Shown here in pieces: positions 6,659 to 64,000 of a stretch of 64,000 nucleotides of DNA; within the stretch, counting starts at the first letter, position 1, and each line of letters opens with the position of its first letter. Source of the DNA: Blastocladiella emersonii ATCC 22665 (taxonomy: Eukaryota; Fungi; Blastocladiomycota); assembly GCA_025594325.1 (NCBI GenBank), contig JANHCV010000015.1:434001-498000 (forward strand), given 5' to 3'. The translations under genes and the position numbers were made by a program. The notes under the pieces are model-generated. The model did not search any database. It was not told where the DNA came from and worked only from the letters and a program-made list of their open reading frames with translations.

Positions 6659-7302
6659 GCTCGCGTGGCTGTTGCGGTCGGTTGCTGGCATCGTGGTATC
6701 AGCGTTTCATCGAGTGCGGATCGTTGCGCTGAGAGGGTGGGTTGCGAAGATCGCCAACGAGTCGCGTCGCGTCCCGAAACGCGTCCCCACCTCGATCACA
6801 TGATATCGCGGCGCGTGAGACATCCACCGTCTCAACCCTCGCATTCACCGACCTGACCGAGCCGACGATGGGGAACCCCACGAACGGAACCCGCGCGTGC
6901 GCGTTTTCGAGGAGCAATTGTACGATCCGGTGACGGTAAATGAGCGTGCGCGCCGACCTTGGTCGCGCGAGTTCGCGCGCATGCGAGATCAGCACTCCAT
7001 CACACGATCGGCGACGCTCTCACATGTCCCAGTTCATGACCAAGGGTGCCGCATTCGAACAACCGAGGGGTTTCCTGTTCGCGCAACCACTGGAACCCTT
7101 GGTGGGAACCGAAATGAGCGTCGCGGGTCACAGGGCTGATGGACGCGCTGACGCCCGAAACGGAGGTCGGAACGAGGCCCGTGTGTCCCGGATGTGAACC
7201 CGTTGGTTGCGAGGCTCGGCGCCATATAAAGCGGCCAGCGACCCTCGCCGCCGGCCTCGCTGGACGACATTCAGCTCCTCAAGACCAATCAGCATAGACA
7301 AG

Positions 7303-7590
7303 ATGCAGCTCACCAAGACCCTCCTCGCCGTCGCAGTCGTCCTCGGCCTCGCCCTGACCAGCGTCTCGGCTGCCCCTGCTCCCGAAGGTGCCTCGATCTC
7401 GAGTACGTAGGCTACGCCGGCTTGAATCCGAACGCGCCCTGACTGACCTCCCTCGTGCGTCCCACGACTAGGCATCGACAACTACTGCCTCCGCGAGTGC
7501 AAGGCCGACTGCGACCGGAAGGGCGGCAACAAGGACCGCTGCTACAGCGACTGCCGCAACTTCTGCCGCCGCGACCCCATCGGCCCCTGA
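7303..7590 (+). CDS. Small secreted Cys-rich peptide 1 (6 Cys, CX3CX3C-X9-CX3CX3C); exons 7303-7402, 7472-7590
   Basis: TATAAA at 7225; signal-like MQLTKTLLAVAVVLGLALTSVSA; phase-1 intron gtacgt...ctgac...tag. Mature exon SIDNYCLRECKADCDRKGGNKDRCYSDCRNFCRRDPIGP*. Confidence 0.85.
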
Positions 7591-8729
7591 ACGCGCTCGT
7601 AGCGCTGGTCGGTGTTGGCCAGAGTGAGAGTTCGTGTCGGACATGCGGAGGAGATTTGTAAAGATATACCGCGTTTTCGCTCAATTCCACTTGATTTACA
7701 CCGTTTGTCGAGAGTTGTGAGCGTGAGAAAAGCTCAGTGATCTCCTGCGAGCGTGATCTGCAAGTCGTCCCAGCAGGCCGCGTCGTTCATGTCGGCGTGA
7801 CTGGCTTGACTGAGCCGGGGGGCTGTGCACGTTCAGTAAATACTTCATCCTCAGGTTCGCGCACCTTTCCGCAACCATGCCATCGGTGGAGTGCTACGTG
7901 GAGCTAGAATTCGATGCGGGACGGATGTTTGATCGAAATTCTTGTCATCCTGCCGTGAGCCGAGGCGATCTTCTAAGCCAGAGCGTCGCGAATCGCGTGG
8001 TCACCTTCGTTCGTCGAGCACTCGAATGCACCCGTGGCGTCACAAACGGACGACGGACGAGGCGAAACCTCGGCGGCGCGGCAAGCTACGACCGAGAGAC
8101 GAGATCGGACCGAAACGAGCGCAGACGACGCGCTGCGCCACAAAACGCGTCCAGCCAACGCTCACATGATATCGCGACGCGTGAGACAAAATGTCGGCTT
8201 CGCATCTTCCGGTGTGGGCCGTGTAGGCGAGCCGAAATGAGTCGATGCGGCCGCGTGGGGCTCGCGACGGGTGCAATACGCGCAATCTGGTGAACTTTTT
8301 GACGCGTTCTCGCGCAAAATCGGCCCTTCGATCAAGATTTGATCACGAGGCGACGCGACTCGCATCCTCGCGCGCGCTGACTGCATCCCGCGTGGGTCCA
8401 CCTTACGGCAAGCGACCCCGCGGGTTCTCCCTCTCGAGCACGGATTGTGATCGGGGACGACGTCCGAAATTGAGTCATAGAGCTGAACGATGCCTTGAAA
8501 TGCGCGGGCCGAACGTATCGACGATCCGCGAAATTGGGGTCACAGGGCGGGCCGACACGTTGGAGTGCGAGGACCGAGCGAATCGACGTGGAAACCCTCA
8601 ACGTTGTGCCGGTTGACGGCCCGGATCCTCGCGACAAAGCAGTGTGCGAACCGTATAAAAGCGAGGCCGTCCCCCGCTGTCCAGTTCTGAACATCAGTCG
8701 CTCCTCCCTCCACACAGCCACTAGACAAG

Positions 8730-9023
8730 ATACAGCTCACCAAGACGTTCCTCGCCGTCGCCGTCGTTCTCGGCCTCGCTCTTACCGGCGGCGCTGCTGC
8801 CCCTGCCAAGGCTGACGACGTCTCGACCGAGATTACGACTCCGCTCGCATCGCACCAGCCGTCAGCGGCGTCCCTTGGCTAACGAGGCACCCTTCGCTCT
8901 TTAGGTGTCGATTTCCGCTGCTGGTCGTACTGCGCTCGCGCCTGCCGCGCCGACTGCGGCGACGACCAGGGCTGCCGAAACAACTGCTACCGCGAGTGCG
9001 ATCAGATGTGCCAGAAGAGTTAA
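8730..9023 (+). pseudogene. Cys-rich peptide 2, probable pseudogene (ATG>ATA, donor GT>TT)
   Basis: Context acaagATAcagctcaccaag matches acaagATGcagctcaccaag of peptide 1. The donor position reads ttacga instead of gtacga. Exon 2 is still intact: VDFRCWSYCARACRADCGDDQGCRNNCYRECDQMCQKS*. TATAAAA at 8654. Confidence 0.75.
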
Positions 9024-9184
9024 GGTGGGAAAACGAGTGAGAGACCGATGCGGAAGAACATACATGGTTGTTTGATGGCAAAATCACTTGGCATAGCGTG
9101 AAAGTGCCTGAAGCGACCCCCTCTTAGAGTATTCGCGTAAGTGAAAGTTCATACGCAAGTTGAGGTGCTCGCCATAACCACCGG

Positions 9185-10500
9185 GACATTTGAGCTCCCG
9201 GAACGTGCCGCGAGAAACTGTCTCGCGATTGTCGCGTGAAATCCAGGCGCTGATCGCGAGACACTCGTGCGCCACCAGCCTCACCTAGCCACGATGCGGC
9301 GCAGCGCGGCTGAGGCGTGGCCCGCCGATCTAGCGCCACACCGCGTCCCCCGTGAGCCCCACTTTGTATCACCCTGCGCCTCAGCCAAGTCAGTGGGCGC
9401 AACCGCTGCGGTTCGGCGCACCGCTGTCGAGCCACTTTGCGCGACTGCTGCGGTTCGGCGCACCGCGCTGGAGCCACGGCGTCGCGTCCGCTGCGTCAGT
9501 GGTCGCTTTCAAGTCGTGCTTGCGAGTACCTTGTCGGTCGGTGGTCGCAACTTGCGGAGCGAGCAAAGTAACGCCCCTGACGCCGAGCGCTATAAAGATC
9601 GCGTTCCCCGCCGCCCACCTCGAGTTGATCCAGTATACCACTCACAGCAGCAGCAAAGCGAGCCGGTCTCTTTTGCACACCTCAATCCAACCGACCGAAC
9701 ACTCTCGCTCACCTCTCCAACATGACGTTCGGTCTCATCGCGTACAAGAAGGCGCTGCTCAAGGGCGCGATTGTCGGGCACGCTGGTGGGCACGCGAATG
9801 GCGGCTTCAACGGGCACGCAAATGGCGGCTTCAACGGGCACGCAAATGGCGGCTTCAACGGGCACGCAAATGGCAGCTTCAACGGGCACGCAAATGGCGG
9901 GTTCAATGGGCACGCAAACGGCGGCTGGAACTCGGGCCACTCGGGCAACTGGAACTCGGGCCACAACGGCAACTGGAACTCGGGCCATGGCGGTCCCCCG
10001 GGCCATCCGGGCCCCGGCCACGGCGGCCCGCCGCACTCGCACTCGGGCGGCAACTCGCAGCACTGGGACGGCTCGAGCCAGTGGTCGTCGGACTGGAGCA
10101 GCGGCGGCAACTGGAGCAGTGGCGGCCAGTGGAACAGCGGCGGCAGCTGGCAGCACGGCGGCAATGGCGGCGGCCAGTGGTCGCACGGCGGCGGCCCGGG
10201 CTACGGTCGCCACCAGCGCGACGACGAGTTCTCCATCTACGACTCGTCCTCGTCCTCGTCGGACGACGCCTCGCAGCAGCTCGATGTCGGCGCCTCGTTT
10301 GATGTTGGCGCTGACGTGAACGCCGATGCCTTTGTCTCGGCGGGCGCCGATCTCTCGTCGGGCGTTGACGCGGACGCCGTTATCTCGGCCACGACCAGCA
10401 CCGCCGCCGTCGTCTAATCGACCAAGTCGGAGCTCGCGAGCGCGCAGGACGCGTCGGCTCGCTTGATATCATGTAATTAGGAATTAAATCGTCTTTAAAA
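9185..10500 (+). repeat. Segmental duplication copy A (Gly-rich gene plus flanks), paralogous to 53745-55060
   Basis: Colinear similarity from the upstream gagctccc...aaactgtctcgcg block to the downstream tcatgtaatt...aaatcgt block; boundaries approximate. Confidence 0.85.
9722..10417 (+). CDS. Gly/Asn/His/Trp-rich low-complexity protein 1 (GGFNGHAN and WNSG repeats, acidic C-terminal third)
   Basis: 231-aa intronless ORF with host-like codon bias; TATAAA at 9591; near-identical paralog at 54283 and diverged paralog at 63402. Confidence 0.85.
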   Translation: MTFGLIAYKKALLKGAIVGHAGGHANGGFNGHANGGFNGHANGGFNGHANGSFNGHANGGFNGHANGGWNSGHSGNWNSGHNGNWNSGHGGPPGHPGPGHGGPPHSHSGGNSQHWDGSSQWSSDWSSGGNWSSGGQWNSGGSWQHGGNGGGQWSHGGGPGYGRHQRDDEFSIYDSSSSSSDDASQQLDVGASFDVGADVNADAFVSAGADLSSGVDADAVISATTSTAAVV

Positions 10501-11305
10501 CTTCATATTCTTCACATCGAGAGTAGTGAAAGACATCGTGAGAATCAAACCCACCCATAAAGGTTTCCCGGCGCGACGACCGTGTCACTCATCCGCACGT
10601 GTTTGTCGTGATCGCGGTTCCTCTCGCCCGCCGAGCGGTCGCCCTCGTTCAACGCATGCCGTACTTGCCATTTCTAGTTGCATGCACGCGCGCGCATGAA
10701 ATAGAACCGCCATGATGAAGCGGTCCGCACGCGCGTTGGGGCACAGTCTCACAGCGGGAGGAACCTTTCCGGCGGCACCGGACACGCCGAAAAGTTCGCG
10801 AGGTCACGCGCGCTCCAGAAACCTCTTGCGCGCGTACCGCAATTTTCGGCGGAGATGAACGCGAGGAGAACTTGCACGAGGCGGTGGCGGGCAAGTGATG
10901 AGTCGCGCGCGGTTCCGCCTATCGCTCAACCTGGTGCCGCATCACCGACGCGTCGAGTTTCACCGCGAGCGAAATGCGGACCGACCATGCGCATAAAGCG
11001 GCGGTCGGCGCTAATTGCGACGTGCTGCCTTGGACCAGCTGACCATGCCGAGAGCGAAAAACGCGTGCTGGGCTCCGCAGACGGCATCCGAGGCCGCTTG
11101 AGGCAACCCGGGCACCGACCTCGAGGAACTCACTCCGGCGGTTCTTGGGGACGCAAGGAAGCGCTCGAGCCGAAAACGTTGAGGCGCTCGTGGAAGCGAA
11201 GGGGAGCGGGCGAGAGTATAAAAGCGGGCCTGTCCCCCGGTCCACCTTTGACTCTCCACCAACGAGACCCACCTCGCCACGTAATCAACACCTACACTAG
11301 ACAAG

Positions 11306-11612
11306 ATGCGCCCCGTCAAGACCTTCTTCGCCGTCGCCCTCGTCCTCGGCCTCGCCCTGACCGGCGTCGCCGCCGCCCCGTCCAAGGCCAACACGGAGGG
11401 TGCCTCGCTTGAGCGTAAGTCGACCCCCCCCCTTCATCTTTCCGATGTTTTCCACTAACCCTTGGCCTTCAAATCATGCAGGTACCGACTACCGGTGCTG
11501 GCTTAACTGCACGGCTGACTGCCGGGACCGTTGCGGCAGCAACAAGTCGTGCCGTACGTCGTGCTACCAGGACTGCGACACGATCTGCGACATGGGCCCC
11601 ATCAACCCCTAA
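11306..11612 (+). CDS. Small secreted Cys-rich peptide 3 (8 Cys); exons 11306-11414, 11482-11612
   Basis: MRPVKTFFAVALVLGLALTGVAAAPSKANTEGASLE; phase-1 intron gtaagt...ctaac...cag; RTDYRCWLNCTADCRDRCGSNKSCRTSCYQDCDTICDMGPINP*. TATAAAA at 11217. Confidence 0.9.
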
Positions 11613-13132
11613 GTCCAAGCGCGCTTCTCGCGTCGGGGATCACAGTCTAGGTCAAGAACAAGTGGAGAAGTGATGGGAGATTTTTTTGGAGAAGAGATTG
11701 GACATAAAGTGGCCTAGACTGCTGGAAATTGCTGGAATATGTTGGGATGTGCTGCGAACTGTTGGGAAGAGAGCGCATGGGCGTGGAAGCAGTAGCTGAG
11801 CGCTTTTTGCATGAGTTTGTAAGGTAAGCGCACGGAAGGCTAAGTGAAAGTGCTTGAGTTAGAGACTGTGGAAGCGGTCGAACGGAGCGTGTCCGCTCCG
11901 CCAGCAACCAATCGAGCAGCGCTGAACACGCTGTTGAGTCTGAGAAGCCCAAACGAGTTAACGTTAAAGTACGAGGGAAGTGTTGACAGCCCAGCTAGGT
12001 GTCTCGCCCTTCATCGCCCTCGTGAAGGTACTCGATTGAGACGGGCGCTCAGCGTCCGAACTGACTTGCGAGACGCGTTGCACCGCAATCGATCCTTTAT
12101 CTACGGACCGGAAATCCTACGAAACTCGCTCGTTAATGTTTTCCAGCGGTGGACTTTCAAGCTTCCTAGGGAATCCGGCGGCGGATGGTCCAGGCTCGAA
12201 AGTTCGGCGAGGAGCTCCAAGCGCGTTGACCACTAAGGTACCAATTTTCGAGCAGCAGAGTGACAGTGGAAGAGGCTCGGGCTGCCCATCGCTTAACGCG
12301 GACCAAGGCGACCTCACGATGGCAATTCGTGTTCCGCCGACCGGTATCTTGGACCGCTGGATTTCGCGACCTCGAAGTAACCCGCGCGAGGTCGAGGTCG
12401 AGGTCTACCCGCGCTAGCCCAGGTATCGTCGTGCGCGAGTCATGATACACAACATGAGCTTGTAACGGCCGTGATCCGGCCGTTGATTCACGGCCACGTG
12501 GCCGGCTCTCCTGGACGCGTCGCTCATCCCACGTGACCAAGCCCTGACCGCGTCGAGCAGTCGGTTGGCGCGACGCGTCCCCGCGCAAGGTTCCGTCGTT
12601 TAGGGCGAGCCTCTACCCACGCAAGTTTCTCGCCTCGCTGCTGCAGCGATGACCGGCGAGCAAAATATCCGCCACGATGAAACGGTCCGCGCGCGAGTTC
12701 ATGCAGGACCGCTGCCGCTGCGGTCGAGGACACTGGATGGGTGCATATCGTCGCGCGTGTCGAAACCAATGACGAGCTTGAAGCGCGCGAGGCGGACACA
12801 GCATCGCCGATGACGCGTCGGAGGTTCAATCAGCCGAGTCCGGTGGCGGCGACCAACTTGGAACCGCTGGGCGTCGCGGCCGCGTGCGTGATGCAGCGAG
12901 CTCATGCACGTATTAACTCGAAACGGAAGGCGAGGGCGAGGCCGACATCAACAAAACCGGTGCCGACGCAAAGGCTGCTCTATTCGCAGCAATGAAGGTC
13001 TGACCAGGTGAAGCACGAGAGCAAGGGAACTTGACGAGAGGAGCGGCGCGAAGTATAAAAGGGGCGCGGCCTCCGCTCCTCCCCTCGACGCCACACCAAC
13101 GACTTGTTCCTTCGACCCGCCTCCTCCTCACC

Positions 13133-13421
13133 ATGCGCGCTACCAAGACCATCTTCGCCTTTGCCGTCGCTCTCTGCCTCGCCGTCACCGGCGTCGCTGC
13201 TGCTGCCCCTGGCGCTGGCGGTGCTCAGAGTACGGGACCTCCAGTTGCTCGCGCCGCCGCAGATCGTCCGCTGACGTCCCAACGTCCTCCCTCCAACAGT
13301 CAAGGACCTCGGCTGCTGGCGCACGTGCAGCAGCCAGTGCAGCCGGAGCTGCGACACGCGCGACTGCCTCGCTGAGTGCTACGGCGACTGCTACGTCGCC
13401 TGCAACATCAAGCGGCCGTAA
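13133..13421 (+). CDS. Small secreted Cys-rich peptide 4 (8 Cys); exons 13133-13229, 13300-13421
   Basis: MRATKTIFAFAVALCLAVTGVAAAAPGAGGAQ; phase-1 intron gtacgg...ctgac...cag; IKDLGCWRTCSSQCSRSCDTRDCLAECYGDCYVACNIKRP*. TATAAAA at 13054. Confidence 0.9.
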
Positions 13422-14082
13422 GTTGCCAGCGTCGTCAAGAACGTCTCGGGATTATGGAGTTGTCTGGAGTTGCGATGATGATATATGGGTCCCGATTTCT
13501 AAACTCGCACAGCAGAGAGAGAGGGAACGTTGAACCGTGTTGCTTACATGCACGTGACTGCGACTTGACCGCGTTGAGCGGACTGACGGCGGAGCAGACG
13601 TCACCCTCGTGCGAGCTTGGTGCAGCTGCGGCCGGGCGCACTGGATGAGTGCATATCCTTCGCGGGCGGGCGGGCAGAGGTCGATGGCGGCGCGTCGGGC
13701 AAACGGAGCGCGCGGGCGTGAGCACAGCATCGCCGATGGCGCGTCCGAGGTTCGTCCGCCAGGTCCAGTGGTAGCGACGGCGACCAAGTTTAGATTGGAC
13801 CGCAGCGCGTGCGTGCGTGAGAGAGTTCATGCACGGCGACGCGGCGGCGAGTCAGACTTTGTCCTCAACCCGGAAAGCGAGGTGGAGGTCGAGGTCGAGG
13901 TCGCTTTGCGCCGGACCGGTGCTGCGAAGGCAAACCTGCTGGTTTCGACGCGATGAGCGTTGGGCCGAGCGGCGCGAGGGCAGCAGGAACGAGTGGAGGA
14001 GTATAAAGGCGGGCCGACCCCCGCATCCCCCTCTTGGTACAGCAACGTCGAATCATTCGTTTCCTCGAGCCAAACCCTCACC

Positions 14083-14389
14083 ATGCGCGCCATCAAGACC
14101 CTCTTCGTTTTCGCCGTCGCCCTCTGCCTCGCCGTGACCGGCGTCGCTGCTGCTGCTGCCCCTGGCGCTGGCGGTGCCAAGGGTACGTGGGGGTCCTCTC
14201 ATCGATTCGCTCGCGCGCGCTCTTCATGGACCGCGTGCTAACGGACGGCGGCCGCGTTCCACTCGGACAACAGTCCAGAACCTCGAGTGCTTCCGGCGAT
14301 GCACCAACGACTGCGCCAGCGGCTGCAACAACGCGCGCGACTGCCTCGCCCGGTGCTACGACTACTGCTACGCCGAGTGCCGCATCTAG
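14083..14389 (+). CDS. Small secreted Cys-rich peptide 5 (8 Cys); exons 14083-14182, 14274-14389
   Basis: MRAIKTLFVFAVALCLAVTGVAAAAAPGAGGAK; phase-1 intron gtacgt...ctaac...cag; VQNLECFRRCTNDCASGCNNARDCLARCYDYCYAECRI*. TATAAA at 14002. Confidence 0.9.
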
Positions 14390-14584
14390 AAGCAGCAGCG
14401 GGTGAGCTCTCCAGGACGGCTCGGGACCAGCCGGGAGCAGTTTGGTGTTGAGATGATGACGATACATTGGCCCCGATATCTATACTCAAAAAAACAGCTG
14501 GGAGAGGAGTGCAAGAGCGCGTCGCTCACCCGCACGTGGCCTTGATTTTGACAGTTGATCATATATTCGCGACCGACTCGTCTC

Positions 14585-15834
14585 TCACATCCGCACGCGC
14601 TTGACCTTACTGTTCCGCTCCTTGCGCTCGCGCTTCTCGTCCGCGCGGCGCTGCTCCTCGGGCGACAACGTCCGCTTAGGCGCCGCCGCCGCAATCTCCC
14701 GCCGCGCGGCCTCGGCGTGCTTGGCGTCCTCCTCCTCGCGGCGGCGGCGCATCCGGATGCGCGCGTCGGGCCGGAGCTCGACCTGGGTGAGGTGGTCGAT
14801 GAGCCAGCACACGAACTGGGTGAAGGCAACGTGCACGGCCCACGCGTCGTCGCCGTGCGGGCGCAGCAGGTCGCGCGAGTCGAGGCGCAGGCGGTACGTC
14901 AGGGAGAGGACCTTGCGGTAGCGCGGGAGGGCGCCGGGTTCGGCGGCGGTATCGTCGTCCTCGACCTCGACGAGGCGCACGCGGTCCGAGACGACCAGTG
15001 ACTCGAGGCGGCGCAGGACCGCCGGGTTCGACAGGAACCGGTGCACGCGCGGGTCGCTCGCGAAGAAGGCAGGGATCGCGTCCGGGTGCTCGGCGTACAC
15101 GGTGAACAGGTCCGCGGGGAGGTACGAGTTGGGCATCGAGGTCGTGTACGTCGTCTACGAGCGATGGAGAGTAAGCGCGGGGTTGCGTGTCAACGCGATA
15201 GTGAGTGGGACGCCGTACCAGATCCTCGCGCTTGCTCATGGCGGCGGGCGCCGTTTTGTGCAGGATAGCGAGGACAAAGTTCTCGGACACGGACGGGTCG
15301 AGGTACACGTCGAACCGCACGCGGTCGTAGTTGACGACGAGAAAGTCCTGCACCACGGCGAACAGGTCCTGGCGGTTGCGGAGCTACACCCAGTGACAGC
15401 GTCAGCCCGCTCCACCACACACACACCGTCCGCGCGTACTGTGATCCGCCCGACGAGCTTCTCACACTTGACGCGTCCCGATCCGTAGACGAGGTAGTCG
15501 GCGGGCCCGTCGCGCAGGAGGCTGCCGTGGCCCTCGCCGACAAACGCAAAGTTGCGGTCGAGCTCGGGCCGGATCTCGGCGTACCACCGGTCGGCGATCC
15601 GCCGGTTGCGCGCGCGGCCCAGCGCGTACACGACGCCGTACAGGACGAACACGGCGGCGACGGTCACCTCTAGGCTGATGGGCAGCCAGTACGCCGCGGC
15701 ATCTGAAGGGGAAAACGGCGGGGGTCAGTTGAGAGGGCGGGCGCACAGGGGGACGCGGCACGGCGCCGTAGGCGTAGTGTACCGGGGCCGATCACGCTCG
15801 CGATAAAGTCGGGCAGCGGGTCGGGGAGCAGCAT
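14585..15834 (-). CDS. CCDC47: CCDC47/DUF1682 family ER membrane protein (PAT complex subunit-like), about 4 exons
   Basis: TM segment followed by GRARNRRIADRW, LLRDGPADYLVYGSGR, LQPRQDLF, and a charged C-terminal coiled coil ending EEQRRADEKRERKERNSKVKRVRM. Pieces are joined by canonical introns. Confidence 0.75.
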
Positions 15835-49879: not shown

Positions 49880-51631
49880 ATGAAGCTGCTCCTGACCCCG
49901 CTCGCCCTCGTGGCGACGCTGGCGACGCTGGCCGCCGGCCTCGCCGTCGACAACTTCTCCAACACCGGCGAGACCAACCTCATCGGCGTGTGGCGCGGCG
50001 GCGAGGGCGTGACCGTCCGCGTCGGCGGCGCCGTCATCAACCCCGGCGGCTACTGGGCCGAGGTCGTCTCGCCCGACACCACATGCTCGGCGCCCATCAC
50101 CTCCATCACCTTCAAGTACACGGCCACCGCCGCCTCGTCCTCGTCCGTCGAGTACCACATGCGCGCCGCCTCGTGCACCGGCGGCCGCGTCGCCACCGCC
50201 ACCGCCAACTTTGCCGTCTCGGCCTCGGGCGGCACCGTCACCATCCCGCTCTCGTCGTTTGCCGGCGCCAACGCTGCGCGCGCCCACGCCTTTGTGATCA
50301 AGGGCCCCGCCGCCGGCGCCATCACCATCACGTCGTTCGATATCGCCACCTCGGGCACCACCCCGCAGCCCACGTCGACCTCGACCACGCCGCAGCCCAC
50401 CAACCCCGCCGGCCAGTGCATCCTGACCTCGGGCCAGTGCTCGGCCCTCAAGGTGTGCCCCGCCGGCGAGTGCTGCTCGCAGTACGGCTACTGCGGCACC
50501 ACGTCCGCCTACTGCGGCACCGGGTGCCAGTCGCAGTGCAACAAGGTGGCGATCCCGGGCCTCGTCGCGTGCGGCTCGACGCCGCCCTCGCCCACCTCGA
50601 CCTCGGCCACGCCCTCGCCCACCACCAACCCCGGCGGCCGCTGCGTGCTGCCCAACGACTTTACCCAGTGCTCGGCGACCCAGCTGTGCCCCAACGGCCT
50701 GTGCTGCTCGGAGTACGGCTGGTGCGGCGCCACCGCCGAGTACTGCACGTCCAACTGCCTGTCGCAGTGCGACAACAAGCCCGTCCTCGGCCTCCCCGTC
50801 TGCGGCTCGTCCACCGTGCCGCCCACCACCTCGACCGCCTCCGTCACCCCCGTCCCGACCGGCTCGTTCCCCGTCCCGCCCGCCGACTCGCGCAACTGGG
50901 TCCCGTCCACGGCCCTCAAGAACCCCAACATCGAGTACGGCAACTTTGGCATGATCAACTCGTGCGGCTGGCCCGGCATGGTCGCCCCCACGCTCGACGA
51001 CGGCCCGCACCCGTCCTACACCAACACCATCCTCAGCCTCCTCTCGGCGGCCGGCGTCAAGACCACCTTCTTCATGATCGGCGCCAACGTCCGCGATAAC
51101 GCCGATATCGCCCGCAACGTGCTCGCCCAGGGCCATCACCTGGCGAGTCACACTATGAATCACGCCGATCTTGCGACCCTCCCGCTCGCCGACGCCAAGG
51201 CCGAGATCGACAACGCCGCCGCCGCCATCACCGCCGCGACGGGGGTTCGCGCCCGCTTCTTCCGCCCGCCCTACGGGTCCATCAACCAGGACGTCATGAA
51301 CTACCTGACCGGCGCCGGGTACCGCGTCATCTACTGGAAGTACGTGTACTCGAGGAGTGTCCTTGCGTCGTCTACCGATGAATACTGACCCTGACCCTCG
51401 TCCCGCAGCCTCGACACCAACGACTGGCGGACGACCACGACGACCGACTCCATCGTCGAGTACTACCGCACCAACGCCGTCAACCCCGCGTCGCGCAGCT
51501 ACATCTCGCTCCAGCACGACATCCACCTCAAGACCTCGCAGGGCTACGGTCGCTGGCTCGCCCAGATCAAGGCGAACGGCTTCACCTCCGTGCCAATGTA
51601 TCTGTGCCTTAACGAGCGCAGTTACCAGTGA
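49880..51631 (+). CDS. Secreted chitin/polysaccharide deacetylase (CE4) with unknown N-terminal domain and two CBM18 modules; exons 49880-51339, 51409-51631
   Basis: Signal peptide [15 protein letters not shown]; two hevein motifs ([18 protein letters not shown]) with P/T linkers; CE4 motifs TLDDGP, HTMNH, RPPYG, DTNDW, LQHD all present. Confidence 0.92.
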
Positions 51632-52373: not shown

Positions 52374-52903
52374 TTGCCCTCATCTGCAACCTATCGGGCG
52401 CCGACGCTGCGACTCAACCCCGACCCGCGCGTCTCCATCGACCTCAGCGCCAGCTACACGCTGGAGGCGCTTGGCCGTACGCGCACATTACACCGGCTCG
52501 CAGCGGCCGTGGCTAACCATACCTCCACCCGCGGGTAGGCTCGCCCTCGTCCGACGCGGGTGCCGCCTGGACGCCGTCGCGCCCCGTCAAGCGTCGCCAT
52601 GACGAGACGGCGCGCGAGGACTCTGTGCAGGGTACGCCGCCACGACCCGAACCGGCGAGCACACACTCACGCGACGTGCGTACCGTAGACGACGACGAGT
52701 CCGACACGGAGCTCGTCGAGAACAGCGACGGTGTCTTCGTCGAAGTGGACCGCAAGCGGCCCATGTACGAGATCGGCGACCTGTTGCCCGCCGCCACCGA
52801 CACGGGCGCCCGCTTCGGCCAGGTCCACACCGGCGACGCACACTACTTTGTCGTCAAGTACACGAGCCGCGCCGTGAGTGCGCGTGAAACGATCGTCTCC
52901 TAA
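52374..52903 (+). CDS. Hypothetical spliced ORF, 5' end unresolved; exons 52374-52476, 52539-52903
   Basis: A gtacgc...gctaac...tag intron joins an upstream open frame to ORF 52625-52903; host-like codon bias; no family recognised. Confidence 0.4.
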
Positions 52904-53352
52904 AGAACCCTTTGTGAAGAAGCGACCGAAGAGTGTGAAAGCCTCGCCGTCAGTGCCACAAAACCTGAATTACACGAACGCGTCGTGAACAATCTGTTTC
53001 TGCGAAACTTGGAGCGGCGATGAGTCGCGCGAGGACGCGCCGGTTAGGTGCACGTGCGCCGGTCACCGCTTGACCCTTTTTCCCGTCCCTGAACGCACGT
53101 CATCCTGAGTCAAAATGACGGCCCCGCCGCAGCAATGAAACGGCCCGCGGTCTTTAACCGCAGCGGCTCAGTGTGCGGCAAGGCGGGCACGCGTGCACGA
53201 ACGACGCGCGAATAGACTTCAAACTTGGCGTCTGTCCCAAACCGCGCGACACCTGTTTGTGCCGACCGTATAAAGACCGGGGGCTCCCCCGCCCGACCTC
53301 GACTCTCCACTAGCGAACTATCCACTTCGCCACGTAGCCAACGCGAAAGAAA

Positions 53353-53593
53353 ATGCGCCCCGTCAAGACCCTCCTCGCGCTCGCCGTCGTCCTCGGCCTC
53401 GCCCTGACCGGCGTCTCGGCTGCCCCCGCCAAGACTGACCCCGAGAGTGCCTCGATCACTCGTATGACTCGCCTCAAGCTGCAGGCACTCCCATCAACCG
53501 CTACTGACCTCAAGTTCTTTCACTTCCCGTTTCTTAGGTACCGACAACCATGGCCCCATTCAGCCCGAGGAAACGCTTATTCGTGGGTGGTAG
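53353..53593 (+). CDS. Peptide family member 6 lacking the whole Cys array (deletion derivative); exons 53353-53461, 53538-53593
   Basis: TATAAA at 53269; signal exon close to peptide 3; intact phase-1 intron; exon 2 reads RTDNHGPIQPEETLIRGW* with no Cys. Confidence 0.75.
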
Positions 53594-53744
53594 ACGACCA
53601 GGGCACATCACGGGTTTGAGGTGTATGAATAAATCAGTTGCATGAAATCCCGTTGCAAATTGCGAGTAAGCGTAGGGCGGTCATGATTGAGAGAGCTACG
53701 TCAGAGAGCTTCAGCACGCAAGCGCAGGAGCCCATCATTAACAT

Positions 53745-55060
53745 TCAGATACCTGAGCTCCCGAAACGCGCCCCGAAAAAAACTGTCTCGCGCGCGTCAC
53801 GTGAAATCCGGGTGCCGATCGCGAGACACCAGCCACCAAGCCGTGACGTGGCGCAGCGCGGCGCATGTCCGCGGCGCCCCACCGCCGCCATCGATCCCGC
53901 GCCACACCGCGTCCCCCATGGGCCCCGGCTGGCATCACCCTGCGCCTCGGGCAAGTCGGTGGGCGCAACCGCTGCGGTTCGGCGCACCGCCGTGGAGCCA
54001 CACCGCGCGACTGCTGCGGTTCGGCGCAGCGCTGGAGCCACGGCGTCACGTCCGCTGCGTCAGTGGTCGCTTTCAAGTCGTGCTTGCGAGTACCTTGTCG
54101 GTAGTTGTTAGTAGGCCGGGAAGATGGGGCGACGATTCCGACGCCGAGCGCTATAAAGATCACGTTCCCCGCCGCCCACCTCGAGTTGATCCAGTATACC
54201 ACTCACAGCAGCAGCAAAGCGAGCCGGTCTCCTTTGCACACCTCAATCCAACCGACCGAACACTCTCGCTCACCTCTCCAACATGACGTTCGGTCTCATC
54301 GCGTACAAGAAGGCGCTGCTCAAGGGCGCGATTGTCGGGCACGCTGGTGGGCACGCGAATGGCGGCTTCAACGGGCACGCAAATGGCGGCTTCAACGGGC
54401 ACGCAAATGGCGGCTTCAACGGGCACGCAAATGGCAGCTTCAACGGGCACGCAAATGGCGGGTTCAATGGGCACGCAAACGGCGGCTGGAACTCGGGCCA
54501 CTCGGGCAACTGGAACTCGGGCCACAACGGCAACTGGAACTCGGGCCATGGCGGTCCCCCGGGCCATCCGGGCCCCGGCCACGGCGGCCCGCCGCACTCG
54601 CACTCGGGCGGCAACTCGCAGCACTGGGACGGCTCGAGCCAGTGGTCGTCGGACTGGAGCAGCGGCGGCAACTGGAGCAGTGGCGGCCAGTGGAACAGCG
54701 GCGGCAGCTGGCAGCACGGCGGCAATGGCGGCGGCCAGTGGTCGCACGGCGGCGGCCCGGGCTACGGCCGCCACCAGCGCGACGACGAGTTCTCCATCTT
54801 CGACTCGTCCTCGTCCTCGTCGTCGGGCGACGCCTCGCAGCAGCTCGATGTCGGCGCCTCGTTTGATGTTGGCGCTGACGTGAACGCCGATGCCTTTGTC
54901 TCGGCGGGCGTCGATCTCTCGTCGGGCGTCGACGCGGACGCCGTGATCTCGGCCACGACCAGCACCGGCGCCGTCGTCTAAGTCGAAGCTTGCAAGCGCG
55001 CGGGACGCGCCGAGCTCGAGTGATGTCATGTAATTATTATTCAAATCGTTTTTCAAACCT
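53745..55060 (+). repeat. Segmental duplication copy B, paralogous to 9185-10500
   Basis: Colinear with copy A; boundaries approximate. Confidence 0.85.
54283..54981 (+). CDS. Gly/Asn/His/Trp-rich low-complexity protein 2
   Basis: 232 aa, near-identical to 9722-10417; TATAAA at 54152. Confidence 0.85.
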   Translation: MTFGLIAYKKALLKGAIVGHAGGHANGGFNGHANGGFNGHANGGFNGHANGSFNGHANGGFNGHANGGWNSGHSGNWNSGHNGNWNSGHGGPPGHPGPGHGGPPHSHSGGNSQHWDGSSQWSSDWSSGGNWSSGGQWNSGGSWQHGGNGGGQWSHGGGPGYGRHQRDDEFSIFDSSSSSSSGDASQQLDVGASFDVGADVNADAFVSAGVDLSSGVDADAVISATTSTGAVV

Positions 55061-55911
55061 CTCCCTTGTGAATCTCGATGCGTCGGACGTCCGCATTTGA
55101 GAGTGGAAGTTGTTGCCTCTAGGCCAGTATCGCATGACCAAAGCCAGTGAGGTGCAATACACCGCTGGAGTCATGCATTTATCAGCCCCTATCATCGACT
55201 AGCTTGGGAGCAGGGCAACGAAACGAAATCCCCTCACCCGCTCCAGCGGCGGTTTCCGAGACGTGTCGCTCATACGCACGTGACTATGGCGATCCCGTCA
55301 AGTCCTTCACGACCGGCTCTCGTGCGCGAGCTCCCACGTGCTCGTGTTGCACTGTTCTACACGGATGTGCCTCGTTGGTAGTCCCGGTTAGAACGTGATT
55401 CTGCCAGCAAGGAACACCCGCCACGATGAAGCGGTTCACGCGCATGCACTTGCAGGCGCACGTCAGATTTGGAAGCTGCAGTCGATGGCACTGGTCAGGC
55501 GTATTTCCTTGTGCGGTAAGAGACCAGCCGCAAAATGACAAGCGAGCGAAGCGCTCGAGGTGAACACAGCATCGGCGATGCAGCTGTTGCGGAGCAGCCA
55601 ATCAGGTTCCAGGGCAGCCATAAACTTGGACCCGCCGCGCTTCTAGTCGCGTGCGAGACGCAGGGAGATTCATGCGTGGAAAGCGATCGTACAACCTGAG
55701 ACGCCGTCGGAAGTTAGACGCGGTTTCTTTAACGGAAAGCAAAAGCGCGTGTGGTTCCGCTCAGCTAACTGTCAAGAAAGAAGGTTCATGCGTTCGCTCA
55801 TGCGCTGAGGAGTTTGAGCTGCGAAGGCACGGGGCGTATAAGAGAGCGCCGCTCCCCGCCCTCTCCTTGGTGCTGCACCACCAACTCGACTTCGAGAGCC
55901 AAGCCTTGAAC

Positions 55912-56214
55912 ATGCTCGCCACCAAGACCATCCTCGCCTTCGCCGTCGCCCTCTGCCTCGCCGTGACCGGTGTTGCGGCTGCTCCCACTGCTCCTGGTGC
56001 CGACGGCGCTACTATCACTAGTACGCACGAACGACCCGGTCACCGAACAACGTTGAGGGACTGATGACGGGTCGGCCCCGCAATAGATTCCGATCTCAAG
56101 TGCTGGCGCCCGTGCGTGACCGGCTGCAACAAGCAGTGCGACACAAGCGAGTGCCGTCACACGTGCTACGCAGACTGCGATGTTATGTGCCGCAACGACC
56201 CCATCTGGCAGTAG
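55912..56214 (+). CDS. Small secreted Cys-rich peptide 7 (8 Cys); exons 55912-56020, 56087-56214
   Basis: MLATKTILAFAVALCLAVTGVAAAPTAPGADGATIT; phase-1 intron gtacgc...ctgat...tag; NSDLKCWRPCVTGCNKQCDTSECRHTCYADCDVMCRNDPIWQ*. TATAAG at 55837. Confidence 0.9.
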
Positions 56215-56468
56215 GCCGCTTCTCGTCCGCGCGACCAGCCACGACCGACGCCAGCTCATTCCGGAGCGGTGGCCAAGAGTTGAGTGAGTGTGATTCATAA
56301 TGTATATGCGCTCGCGCAGCTTGTTGTATTCAATGACTCTACGGCTGCGAGAGCGAGGCAGCCCTGCTGGTGGGCGACGTGTTGCTCACTGGCACGTGAT
56401 CGAGGGTCACCAGCCACGCGAGACTCGCCCCTCGCCCGCTCTGCAAACATGTACCATACGCCAAACCA

Positions 56469-59418
56469 ATGTATTCCCGCCGTGTTAGACTTCGTGCAAC
56501 AAGACTGGGACCACTTCGCCGAGCTGCGCCCGACTTCAGCGCTGAGCGCCACCGCGACACGCCGTTCCGCGCCGCGCCAGCCCTTGCTCCTGCACCCAGC
56601 GTCAACGACTTTGGCGACGTTGAAGACGTCCTCGGCTTAGACGAGTTAGACGATCTCGGGTTCTTTGCTTCCGAAGTCGATGACTTCGAGCGCGTGGACG
56701 ACTTTGGAGATGACCTTTGCGACGATGCAGATTACCCAAACGATACGGATCGTCCAGACGATGCAGATTACCCAAACGATACCGATCGTCCCGACGATAC
56801 GGAGCGCCCGAACGAACTAGACGACGTGGATGATGACTTGGACGACGAGGACGACTTACCCGTGGATCTGATCGAAGAGTGTGCTCCGCCGTTGACGCGA
56901 GCGCGCCTTGTCCCGCATCGCATTGTTCGCTCTCGCTTGCACTGGACCAAGTGGAACATGCTTGGCGTTGGGCAACCTCCGCACCGGCTTGCGGCTAGGT
57001 TTGGTTACGCCAAGGCGATCCGTTCGAGCGTTGGCTTCCGCCGCCAAACGAGTTACTCAAACACCCTACCGACCGACGCGCTTACTCCTGAGCAACTTCT
57101 ACTTATCCACGACGCCATCCTTAGAGCTGGTACGAACGGCGCTCTTTCCGCGTTCCCATCGACGAGTGTGGAAACGGAGCGCGACTCGCTCCCCGTGGTC
57201 TCTAGCGAGTTGACGGCGCTTTCCGCGTACTCCCGGCTTGGCGAGTCACCACCCGCTGTCTTCCTCGTCGAGCCCGAGGAGCACGATTCATTGCAGAGCC
57301 GACATCTCCTCATTGTCGTCCCTGAAACTGCCGCGAGCAAACTTGCACCACGCGACACCGCGTGGGAGACCCCGCTGGCTGCCACGGCGGCCCTTGATGG
57401 GGGCATCCATCCGCTCCAACTCCGGCGCCGCGCCGAGCTCGCGGGCATCACGCACGGATTGCGCCGTTTGCAGCTTCGCGAGTCGTTTGCGTCGTTCAAC
57501 TTTGCTGTCAATCTTCCGACCACGAGCGGCAACACCAAGGTGCTTGTGATGACAAACGAGTACGTCTTCTTCGGTTTGATCCGAGCCGTTTGTCGCGCCT
57601 GTGTACTGACCATTCCCATGTAGCCGCCTCCTTGTGATCGCCGCCGCCGCGAAACCAGGCGATACCGAGAATCGCAAGGGTAACCTCATCTTCGTTGATC
57701 TTGTCGCTCGCGCTTACCGCATCGAAACGGAGCTTCACTCGATTCCGAACACCACTCCCAACTCGCTTCTTCCGCGCCGCTCGCTTACGGTTGCAGCAGT
57801 CGTGATTTGGCGCAACTGGGCCGTATCAGGCGGCGTGAACGGGACCTTTGCCGTGTCGCGTATCGAGGACGGCTCGCCCGTCGCGCTTCCAGCTGGATTC
57901 GGCGGCTTCGGTGACTCCGAGTACGCTGTCGCGCTTGCACAATCGCCCGAGGCACCGTGGGTGATTGCTGCGGGCGACCAGCACGGGTACGCTGCTAACG
58001 GCTCTGATCCTACCGATTTCGTGCTGACACGCCTGAACTTGAGTAGAAAACTTGTCGTCTTCAATCTCGCGCGTATCGTGCGCGGCGACTTCGACCGTTC
58101 GTTTGTGCGCCTTGATGTCGAACATTGACCTGTGAACCGACTTGCTTTCGCTGGCGCGCACCGTCTTGTCGCTGGATGCGACGGGACTATCGGATCGAAG
58201 TCGAGCGCGCTCATTGTTTGGGACCTCCGGCGCGTCAAAGAGCTGCAGTGCCACGAGAGGGCCGATCCGCCGTGGCGCATGCCTGTGGGCCTGGGTCCAC
58301 GGCGCAGCGTCCTCGCGCACCCGTTCCCGATCATCGACGTCGCTGCTGTCAACGGGACGCATGGGCCGTGGGCTATCTTTGTCACGTCCGCGCGCCAACA
58401 CGACAACTCTGGTGCGGCCTCAGGCGACCAGCGCTTGTGGCTTGTCGATCTTGCACCGGGCTCCGACCTCGAGTTCCAGCTGCACCGCAACGTTCATCCT
58501 GCCATCGTGTGCGGGTGGTGGACCGGGCTGACTGACTGCGACGTGATTGGGTTCAGGTACGCATGCGCGCGGGACGCATTGCGTCAAGCTGGTCTGTACT
58601 AACCCAACAGCACGCGGTCTAGTCCGTGTGGCCGCTACGCGTACGCGGGCGGGTGCCAGAACCGACTTGTCGTTGTTGACGTTTCGAATCGGTCACGGAC
58701 GCTGGGTATTCTCGCGCACTCAGGTACGGCCGCTCGCGCACCTGTCTTCGGCATGATCTGACACGCACGACTTCGACGAGTAGACCAAACCGTCGACAAC
58801 GAGGACATGAGCGTCGGAATTCTTGATGCCGTGTGGCTCCCGGGCAGCGACCTCCTCGCTACGGCAGGCCGCGACGGCGTGGTTCGGTTTTGGGACATCG
58901 CGCAGCTGCATGGCTACCGTCCGACTCTCGCGTGCGTTGCGCGGTGCGCCAGGTCACCCATGGACTTGGGACAAGCTCTTCGACGTGTCCCAACGCGCGA
59001 CGAGATCCTGAACGACGCGGCAGCTTCCTTGATCGCTGCTCGCAACGCGACCCCGCAGGTCGACTCGGTGCATTTCGCGCGGCGCAAGCTTGACGCTGAC
59101 GACGTCTGGTTCGGCGGCGCGGATGTTGACCTCGATGCGCTCTATGGCTTTGGACCCAACGCGATCGACGCGACGCCGCTGCCTGTTGGCAAGCTCGTGC
59201 GGTACTCGGCCGCGGACGCGGATTGGCCGCGCGGCGCGTGGGGTGCGCTGAACGTTGGCCGCGGGCCCATTTCGCGGCTTGTTGTGTCGCCCGGCGAGTC
59301 CGTGCTTGTGGTTGGGCTCGCCGACGGATGCGTCGCGTTCCAGGTCGGGTCGGTGCTTGAAGAAGCGGGCGAGGGTCTACGCGAGGTTGAGCAGCTGCTC
59401 AGAGAGTGCGCTGAATAG
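56469..59418 (+). pseudogene. WD40-repeat protein (possibly Raf1/Dos1-like DCAF) with one in-frame TGA; exons 56469-57559, 57624-58556, 58611-58723, 58784-59418
   Basis: Three canonical introns join four ORFs in frame. WD repeats: H*PVNRLAF...LIVWDL and LDAVWLPGSDLLATAGRDGVVRFWDI. The only lesion seen is TGA at 58126-58128. Subfamily call is tentative. Confidence 0.65.
56720..56795 (+). repeat. 2 x 36-bp coding tandem repeat (DDADYPNDTDRP) in the acidic N-terminus of the WD40 gene
   Basis: gacgatgcagattacccaaacgatac(g/c)gatcgtcc occurs twice. Confidence 0.9.
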
Positions 59419-63401: not shown

Positions 63402-64000
63402 ATGACCTTCGGCATCATTGGCGGCAAGATCGGCGCGATCATCGGCGGCGGTGCCAACTGCAACACGGGCTTCAACGGCGGCTTCAACGGCGGCTTCAAC
63501 GGCGGCTTCAACGGCGGCTTCAACGGCAACTACAACAACGGCGGAAACTGGGGCCACGGCGGCCAGTACAACAACGGCGGAAACTACTACAACGACGGCT
63601 CGTACTACAACGGCCACAGCGGCAACTGGAACTCGGACTGGAACTCCAACTGGAACAGCAACTGGAACTCGGACTGGAACTCGAGCTGGGGCGGTAACGG
63701 CAACTGGGGCGGGAACGGCAACTGGGGCGGCAACGGCAGCTGGGGCCACGGCGGCCGCTGCCAGCGCGACGAGGACGGTTCTTCGTCGCACCTGCAGTCG
63801 ACGGACAACGGTGGCGACGCGTTCCAGTCGGCGGGTGACGCGTTCCAGGCCTCCTCGGCCCAGCAGCAGCACGTCGACTCGTTCTCGGCTGCCAGCGCTA
63901 CCTCGCACAACAGCGTCGACGAGTTCTCTGCCGCGTCGACCGTCGACCACTCGTTCGTCTCGCACGCCGCGGACGCGCACGCCCAGGCTGAGGCCGCTGC
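63402..64000 (+). CDS. Gly/Asn/Trp-rich low-complexity protein 3, partial (runs off the window; absent from the ORF track)
   Basis: MTFGIIGGKIGAIIGGGANCNTGFNGGFNGG...WNSDWNSNWNS...WGGNGNWGG...GRCQRDEDG followed by an acidic Ser/Ala-rich tail; same layout as the other two Gly-rich proteins. Confidence 0.85.
   Translation, partial: MTFGIIGGKIGAIIGGGANCNTGFNGGFNGGFNGGFNGGFNGNYNNGGNWGHGGQYNNGGNYYNDGSYYNGHSGNWNSDWNSNWNSNWNSDWNSSWGGNGNWGGNGNWGGNGSWGHGGRCQRDEDGSSSHLQSTDNGGDAFQSAGDAFQASSAQQQHVDSFSAASATSHNSVDEFSAASTVDHSFVSHAADAHAQAEAA

Follow-up and report, generated by a model that had tools for sequence, protein, structure and literature searches.

Seven two-exon peptide loci, g1 to g7, were found in a 64-kb stretch of the genome of Blastocladiella emersonii ATCC 22665 (identified by exact protein matches), hereafter the window (G000:C7:434001-498000; GC content 63.5%; genome of 32.65 Mb on 21 contigs). 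All seven lie on the plus strand and share one layout: a TATA box, a short exon for a putative signal peptide, a phase-1 intron and, in all but one, an exon encoding a ladder of regularly spaced cysteines. The data indicate real, selected genes, and the loci belong to a multigene family that, judged from sequence comparisons, is known so far only from B. emersonii. By its predicted fold, the family is a four-rung variant of the cystine-stapled helical hairpin, an otherwise known structural class. With a probability of roughly 0.55, it is a family of secreted four-disulfide hairpin peptides, most likely used in defence or competition by this saprotrophic water mould. An earlier note on this DNA had proposed seven such genes; all seven loci are at the places it gave, but g2 is a pseudogene and g6 is a relic without the ladder.

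Layout of the peptide genes

The spliced models were built from a read-through of window positions 7000-14700 and 52600-56500. Coordinates are window positions, from the ATG to the end of exon 1 and from the start of exon 2 to the stop codon. Five of the seven copies (g1, g3, g4, g5 and g7) look intact. In g1, a TATAAA at 7225 is followed by the signal/pro exon (7303-7402), an intron (7403-7471) and the second exon (7472-7590); the 72-residue precursor is a six-cysteine variant without C4 and C5. The g3 gene (TATAAA at 11217; exon 1, 11306-11414; exon 2, 11482-11612) encodes a 79-residue precursor with eight cysteines. The precursor of g4 (TATAAA at 13054; exon 1, 13133-13229; exon 2, 13300-13421) has 72 residues, eight cysteines and an X4 loop; that of g5 (TATAAA at 14002; exon 1, 14083-14182; exon 2, 14274-14389), whose nearest paralogue is g4, has 71 residues and eight cysteines. 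The last intact copy, g7 (TATAAG at 55837; exon 1, 55912-56020; exon 2, 56087-56214), encodes 78 residues, again with eight cysteines and an X4 loop. Apart from the 71 residues of g5, the precursors of the intact genes are ~72-79 residues long.

Across g1 to g7, exon 1 is 97-109 nt in length, and the intron is 66-91 nt long, of phase 1 and located at an identical position. The donor reads GTA(C/A/T) in six of the seven introns; the acceptor is YAG in 7/7, and a branch-like CTRAY motif is present 26-36 nt 5' of the acceptor, also in 7/7. The TATA box is located 75-89 nt 5' of the start codon, being TATAAA, at 76-89 nt, in six loci and TATAAG, at -75, in g7; the earlier note had likewise assigned one TATA box to each gene. 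TATAAA occurs ten times on the plus strand of the window, six times as a peptide-gene promoter and twice in front of neighbouring Gly-rich genes.

The second exon encodes ~40 residues. In g2, g3, g4, g5 and g7 it follows the framework C-X3-C-X3-C-X3-C-X4/5-C-X3-C-X3-C-X3-C, and in g1, which has six cysteines, exactly the innermost pair (C4 and C5) is gone. The framework had been ascribed to all seven genes, with six cysteines in the first; it stands for these six loci, but g6 has no cysteine. In the six-frame translation of the window, the double CX3C ladder is absent outside the peptide loci.

Sequence conservation and selection

Between paralogues, the upstream 300 nt, the introns and the 3' flanks are at background, with a mean identity of 0.54-0.57 (intron, 0.54). 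The mean identity of exon 1 is 0.69 and reaches up to 0.92, and that of exon 2 is 0.55 with all cysteines kept. BLASTN between copies aligns essentially exon 1 and the adjoining 5' untranslated region only. Together with the phase-1 introns found in 7/7 loci, these values bear out the conserved signal/pro exon, with an intron at one position, that had been described from the letters.

The mature domains of 14 family members were aligned. Six cysteine columns are invariant, and the other two are missing in g1 alone; most non-cysteine columns have an entropy of 2.2-3.3 bits. Trp after C1 (8/14) and Tyr after C6 (10/14) recur, as the earlier note had remarked, and so do Gly after C4 (9/14) and a C-terminal Pro, which is present in 10 of the 12 sequences having that position.

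For the selection test, the three closest independent pairs (g4/g5, C18a/C18b and C2b/C2c) were pooled. The ratio of nonsynonymous to synonymous differences per site (pN/pS) is 0.37 for exon 1 versus 0.91 for exon 2 without its cysteine sites (Fisher p=0.002). Selection on the signal/pro exon is thus purifying, and in the mature domain the exposed residues change near-neutrally or faster. At the non-cysteine sites of exon 2, omega for the closest pairs is 1.45, 1.04 and 0.48, values that come from tiny samples with strong codon bias (GC content at third codon positions, GC3, 0.86). The signal is far more conserved than the mature part, in which the cysteines are fixed, as in the conotoxin or defensin-like mode of evolution. 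A multigene family that combines a conserved signal exon with a variable cysteine-rich exon, as proposed beforehand, is what both the identities and the pN/pS of the two exons describe.

These data also bear on the view that the loci are non-functional: duplicates in decay, or ones that were never expressed, in which the open frames survive by chance. Such a view would agree with two of the seven window copies being visibly broken, with several copies being unannotated and with our having obtained no transcript support. We consider it highly improbable, given that introns and flanks are saturated and yet ~16 loci on three contigs have retained every cysteine codon, their reading frame, splice signals, signal peptide and TATA position, and that exon 1 is under purifying selection.

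Precursor and predicted fold

The product of exon 1 starts with M-R/K-x-x-K, followed by ~15 hydrophobic residues, an Ala-rich probable cleavage site and a short acidic linker rich in Ser, Ala and Glu; it contains a putative endoplasmic reticulum (ER) signal peptide with n-, h- and c-regions. Arg is present at the junction between linker and hairpin in some members only. The mature domains are 37-43 residues in size and near-neutral to acidic, with a net charge of -4 to +3.

AlphaFold2 (AF2), run on the family alignment, predicted helices at residues 3-17 and 21-35 of the g3 domain, with a mean predicted local distance difference test score (pLDDT) of 85.3. For the six-cysteine g1 domain, helices were predicted at residues 3-16 and 20-31 (pLDDT 83.6). 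The mature domain is thus predicted to be a helix-loop-helix hairpin, with antiparallel helices and a 4-5-residue turn; the helical hairpin envisaged in the earlier note was returned by the modelling at a pLDDT of 84-85.

Foldseek gave no match in the Protein Data Bank (PDB) at E<=0.001. In an exhaustive alignment to 48,161 PDB chains, the top whole-chain matches were plant alpha-hairpinins, led by the Jug r 2 leader peptide (Z 5.9, rmsd (root-mean-square deviation) 2.0, 38 residues) and followed by Luffin P1 (Z 5.1), VBP-8 (Z 5.0), VBP-10 (Z 4.5) and Nigellin-1.1 (Z 4.2). The likeness to alpha-hairpinins suggested earlier is therefore upheld, these being the closest small solved folds (Z 4.2-5.9).

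The mirror symmetry of the ladder and the known hairpinins suggest, by analogy, a nested pairing of C1-C8, C2-C7, C3-C6 and C4-C5. That g1 lacks both C4 and C5 lends this nested ladder internal support, since such a ladder predicts their being lost together. The gene structure, the existence of the family, the pattern of constraint, the predicted fold and the lack of relatives are results of the analysis; that the peptides are expressed, secreted and paired in this way, and what they do, is what we infer. If the signal is cut off behind the Ala run, a short linker rich in Ser, Ala and Glu would remain in front of the hairpin. In the ER, the eight cysteines would oxidise into four nested rungs: they are spaced as i, i+4, i+8 and i+12 along those sides of the two helices that face each other, and would pair across the hairpin. 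The product would be a rigid, protease-resistant rod of ~4.4-5.0 kDa, whose outward-facing residues would be free to vary, and do vary. The peptides would act as secreted binders in interactions with other organisms.

Relation to known peptide families

The Pfam hmmscan gave no match, either for six mature domains (E<=10) or for four precursors in full length (E<=1), and literature searches found no publication describing the peptide family; in line with the earlier note, the peptides are not assignable to a named family. Against 1.84 billion representative proteins, the family profile gave six matches, four of which are B. emersonii's own proteins. The remaining two are a 396-residue protein of Botryococcus braunii, with six six-cysteine modules, and a 275-residue protein of Rhodiola kirilowii, with four; at 36-50 bits, both are driven by the cysteine pattern. 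Similarities to TIL and Ole e 6 are also cysteine-driven, and they were seen in these alga and plant matches, not in the B. emersonii peptides. No eight-cysteine ladder protein of another organism was found at E<=0.001 among the 1.84 billion proteins. As eight aligned cysteines alone should score roughly like the Botryococcus and Rhodiola matches, ladders of four rungs seem to be truly uncommon in annotated proteins; short intron-containing genes are easily missed by annotation.

The pattern search that had been proposed was uninformative: when the DNA pattern of the eight-cysteine ladder was run against metagenome contigs, the matches listed were (TG)n-type simple repeats, and none of those listed was family-like at <=10 cysteines. 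By tblastn with a single protein (P0002) as query, none of 600 metagenome pattern matches passed as a relative. A search of the ESM Atlas by features gave a best score of 0.84 for the precursor, nothing for the mature part, and no lead.

Like the plant alpha-hairpinins and vicilin-buried peptides, the B. emersonii domains are predicted helix-loop-helix structures, which would be stapled by antiparallel disulfides from CX3C motifs, and some of the plant peptides come from multi-module precursors, as does one B. emersonii relative. The plant motifs are CX3C-Xn-CX3C (4C) and C-X3-C-X3-C-X4-20-C-X3-C-X3-C (6C, including Nigellin-1.1); the only two eight-cysteine variants reported for plants are predicted ones with a different, asymmetric layout (PMC11591084). 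The g1 domain, C-X3-C-X3-C-X10-C-X3-C-X3-C, matches the 6C motif exactly, and the other members contain this motif plus one extra rung. Different from the two or three rungs of the plant peptides, those of B. emersonii would have four (eight cysteines), and their turn, of 4-5 residues, is very short; they are fungal, near-neutral or acidic, and each comes from a separate two-exon gene that supplies a signal peptide of its own. No homology to the plant peptides beyond the cysteine pattern was detectable among the 1.84 billion proteins or in the PDB (best E=0.014).

That best sequence match among solved structures is the pollen allergen Ole e 6 (PDB 1SS3; Pfam PF09253; E=0.014), which was second in the Foldseek ranking. 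Ole e 6 is also a two-helix protein, with six cysteines in a CX3CX3C...CX3CX3C arrangement; different from our peptides, it is a plant pollen protein with three disulfides, and the match to it is marginal and cysteine-driven. The Pfam Ole_e_6 hidden Markov model (HMM) did not match the B. emersonii peptides.

The hairpinin fold class includes trypsin inhibitors, and scorpion kappa-toxins of the same fold block K+ channels. The peptides could accordingly be protease inhibitors or ion-channel blockers of the stapled-hairpin type, with the turn or an aromatic/basic pair as reactive site. The predicted fold class is the same as that of the plant hairpinins, Arg or Lys is present in the turn of 7/13 sequences, and the Trp after C1 and the Tyr after C6 are conserved. 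Since the turn has only 4-5 residues and would be closed by the C4-C5 bridge, which makes it shorter than canonical inhibitor loops, and since no sequence homology to any inhibitor was found, we regard this role as distinctly unlikely.

Two families of other organisms are instructive for comparison. The Hairpin Loop Peptides of fungi and insects are ~64 residues long when mature, begin with GP, are 58-75% hydrophobic with <=2 charged residues and have a loop of 15 residues and three disulfides; they are not reported in Blastocladiomycota (PMC13357843). They resemble the B. emersonii family, as we infer it, in being secreted fungal two-helix peptides with mirror-symmetric disulfides, and they have a proposed antimicrobial role. 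The domains studied here are of 37-43 residues, highly charged, with eight cysteines (four predicted disulfides) and a 4-5-residue turn; on length, charge, cysteine number and turn, membership was rejected. Neurotoxin B-IV of the nemertean Cerebratulus lacteus is a four-disulfide helical hairpin (PMC6410017). It provides a precedent for such a hairpin acting as a toxin, but it is an animal peptide of 55 residues and strongly basic. The Cys spacing of neurotoxin B-IV differs from the B. emersonii ladder, and the toxin was not among the matches of the PDB profile search at E<=10. With the plant 6C motif (PMC11591084) and the nemertean toxin (PMC6410017) as known representatives of the structural class, the term 'undescribed system' used in the earlier note goes too far.

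Runs of C-X3-C-X3-C are also present in nematode C_tripleX cuticle proteins (PF02363) and the cysteine-rich domains of cnidarian minicollagens, the minicollagen motif being CX3CX3CX3CX3CC (PMC4863159). Different from the peptides, these are long, repetitive structural or polymerising proteins without a mirrored second half-ladder after a turn. C_tripleX clusters were among the ESM Atlas shape matches, and C_tripleX membership was rejected by the hmmscan (mature domains, E<=10; precursors, E<=1). That the peptides are structural blocks, cross-linked by disulfides between molecules to form polymers of a wall, a cyst coat or a matrix, would fit these CX3C runs (minicollagens, PMC4863159; C_tripleX, from the fold matches) and the fact that two copies adjoin Gly/Asn/His/Trp-rich low-complexity genes resembling wall or matrix proteins. 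We find it very unlikely: the peptides are single 40-residue domains without a polymer-forming partner domain, their even number of mirrored cysteines is predicted to pair inside the hairpin, their surfaces are hypervariable, not even at E<=10 was there a Pfam C_tripleX match, and the Gly-rich neighbours are absent at other peptide clusters.

Two further candidates were dropped. For small Tim or twin-CX3C mitochondrial proteins, there was no Pfam match (Tim10/DDP), and every member starts with an ER-type signal sequence. Metal binding of the metallothionein or vanabin-like kind was ruled out because of the signal peptide.

The family across the genome

A profile of the six mature domains identified five further loci of the same kind, C18:1236107, C18:1583566, C2:790805, C2:792017 and C2:671945. 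All five have a TATA box, an agacaagATG-like start context, a signal exon, a phase-1 intron and an eight-cysteine exon. With the seven window loci added, there are 12 that combine a signal exon and a phase-1 intron with a TATA box located at -74 to -98 (TATAAG in one). The cysteine-ladder exon is present in 11 of the 12; it is lost in g6 only.

About 95 kb upstream on C7, a gene of three modules with Arg-Arg junctions was read in the DNA. When one of these modules and the signal exon were used as queries, a second cluster emerged at C7:328000-339600, which consists of this gene and four single-module genes (328-337 kb). The last spacing of the four single-module genes is C-X2-C, and the signal peptide of the cluster is nearly identical to that of the window genes. 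A divergent eight-cysteine member, found with the same queries, is located at C18:1581400-1582050 on the minus strand, head-to-head with the gene at C18:1583399; its spacing is C-X4-C-X3-C-X3-C-X5-C-X1-C-X3-C-X3-C, and it has a Pro/Arg-rich tail. Beyond the 12 loci, six more divergent ones carry the same signal peptide. The total is ~18 loci on three contigs (C7, C2 and C18), all with closely similar signal peptides, and ~16 of them are intact.

The two decayed copies of the window are in line with a turnover by birth and death, with new copies arising by tandem duplication and old ones decaying. The g2 locus (plus strand; TATAAA at 8654; exon 1, 8730-8832; exon 2, 8905-9023) is a recent pseudogene: its start position, 8730, is ATA instead of ATG and its donor, at 8833, reads TT in place of GT. 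Its eight-cysteine exon 2 is still open. There is no ATG at all within 8600-8905, and no alternative phase-1 GT is available. In g6 (plus strand; TATAAA at 53269; exon 1, 53353-53461; exon 2, 53538-53593), the signal exon and the intron are perfectly kept. Compared to g3, its exon 2 has an in-frame gap of 99 nt (33 codons), which takes out all eight cysteines, and the stop is shifted. This copy is best read as a relic that would encode a cysteine-free product of 54 residues.

Annotation status

Five family members are already in GenBank as hypothetical proteins, among them g1 (H9P43_009662) and g3 (H9P43_009664), so the word 'hidden' used for the family in the earlier note was too strong. The deposited models of g1, g3, C2b and C18b are identical to the spliced models built here. 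As the GenBank annotation was produced by the ab initio gene finders of funannotate, with no mention of RNA data in the paper (PMC9730499), the agreement counts as independent support from computation and not from transcripts. When 5.8 billion proteins were searched through a word index, these five members were recovered; g4, g5, g7, C18a and C2a did not turn up and are probably unannotated. The statement that the genes had been missed by gene calling thus applies to g4, g5 and g7, for which no annotated protein was found, and not to g1 and g3.

The C2:671945 locus corresponds to H9P43_007685 (P0007). In its deposited model, of 99 residues, translation begins 22 codons before the family's conserved Met. 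This start is probably incorrect, since it lies only ~17 nt downstream of a TATAAA, which is at -83 from the conserved ATG. The analysis thereby exposes annotation gaps, with at least five intact members missing in the deposited proteome and one annotated model with a probably wrong start.

Proposed function

The tandem arrays, the ~18 diverged copies, the decay of copies, the combination of a conserved signal with a variable mature part and the multi-module precursor are hallmarks of peptides that meet changing targets outside the cell, and they favour a role in defence or competition. Given the net charge of the mature domains, specific binding is more plausible than membrane lysis of the simple cationic kind.

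Several points weigh against this interpretation. Being only -4 to +3, the net charge is unlike that of classical cationic defensins, and classical cationic membrane disruption is unlikely. A pN/pS near 1 at the exposed sites fits relaxed constraint as well as diversifying selection, the two being inseparable because of the few sites and the GC3 of 0.86. A hairpin is so simple a fold that Z scores of 4-6 are weak evidence, and the signal peptide was judged by inspection. The GenBank annotation of family members was ab initio, no RNA sequencing run was found listed, and look-ups of the exact g3 and g1 proteins returned no contig on record. Moreover, the restriction to the B. emersonii lineage rests on annotated proteins.

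The same charge and precursor data can be read in another way, namely that the peptides are signals of the fungus to itself, in zoospore germination, sporulation or the sensing of cell density, instead of weapons. They are small, putatively secreted and cysteine-stabilised, their TATA promoters are typical of regulated genes, and a near-neutral charge suits a receptor ligand better than a membrane-active peptide. The related three-module precursor with Arg-Arg junctions resembles Kex2-processed precursors of fungal signalling peptides (PMC6339444). For receptor-matched ligands, however, ~18 divergent paralogues, near-neutral exposed residues and pseudogenes would be unusual, and no receptor candidate linked to the peptides was found; we therefore hold self-signalling to be unlikely.

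Defence or competition by secreted hairpins also has a bolder form, which we consider rather unlikely. The family could be a fungal counterpart of the venom-peptide superfamilies of animals, in which one conserved signal exon serves a diversifying library of four-disulfide hairpin binders against specific targets of competing or grazing microbes. Such a library would come from single genes and from the three-module, Kex2-type precursor, and its targets could be, for instance, ion channels or surface proteins. If this were true, the CX3C ladder with its four rungs would represent a peptide scaffold not described before, hyperstable and very compact.

With expression, secretion and activity all presumed, the importance of the family is limited for now. 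Almost no secreted peptides have been characterised in the early-diverging zoosporic fungi, and the family provides a concrete, testable set, with five intact members in the window and ~16 genome-wide. If secreted four-disulfide hairpins are indeed produced, a 40-residue, four-rung hairpin with variable outer faces would be an attractive scaffold for peptide engineering, and the hairpinin class would extend from plants to fungi, probably by convergence.

Neighbouring elements

The motif ATGAARCGGYYCRCG (ATGAA(A/G)CGG(T/C)(T/C)C(A/G)C(G/A)) is present on the plus strand at 10715, 12677, 53135 and 55426, 220-590 nt upstream of g3, g4, g6 and g7 only. Its significance is circular, because the motif was derived from those same four sites. 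It was rejected as a family-wide promoter element, being absent from the fetched flanks of other loci, and no 9-mer is common to more than four of 12 upstream regions. At g3, g4, g6 and g7, the motif was probably left over from an upstream region that was duplicated in an ancestor.

A 231-residue low-complexity open reading frame (ORF) rich in Gly, Asn, His and Trp is present in two copies, at 9722-10417 and 54283-54981, with 98% protein identity. The copies lie in a duplicated 1.3-kb segment (9191-10501 and 53754-55058; 91% DNA identity). Each has its own TATAAA (9591 and 54152) and is located just downstream of a decayed peptide gene, g2 or g6. Upstream of each Gly-rich gene is a direct repeat of ~39 nt (87% identity), at 9397-9435 and 9439-9477, with the other copy at 53963-54041. 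A peptide gene and a Gly-rich gene as one 'system' was rejected, as the near-identical copies are in the window only and none is present at other peptide clusters. Weaker relatives of the Gly-rich ORF are located at 63402-63662 of the window and on C21. At ~50513-50800 on the plus strand, two hevein/CBM18-like chitin-binding cysteine motifs (..YCG..C.S.C..) are present in one frame, in an unrelated secreted-looking protein.

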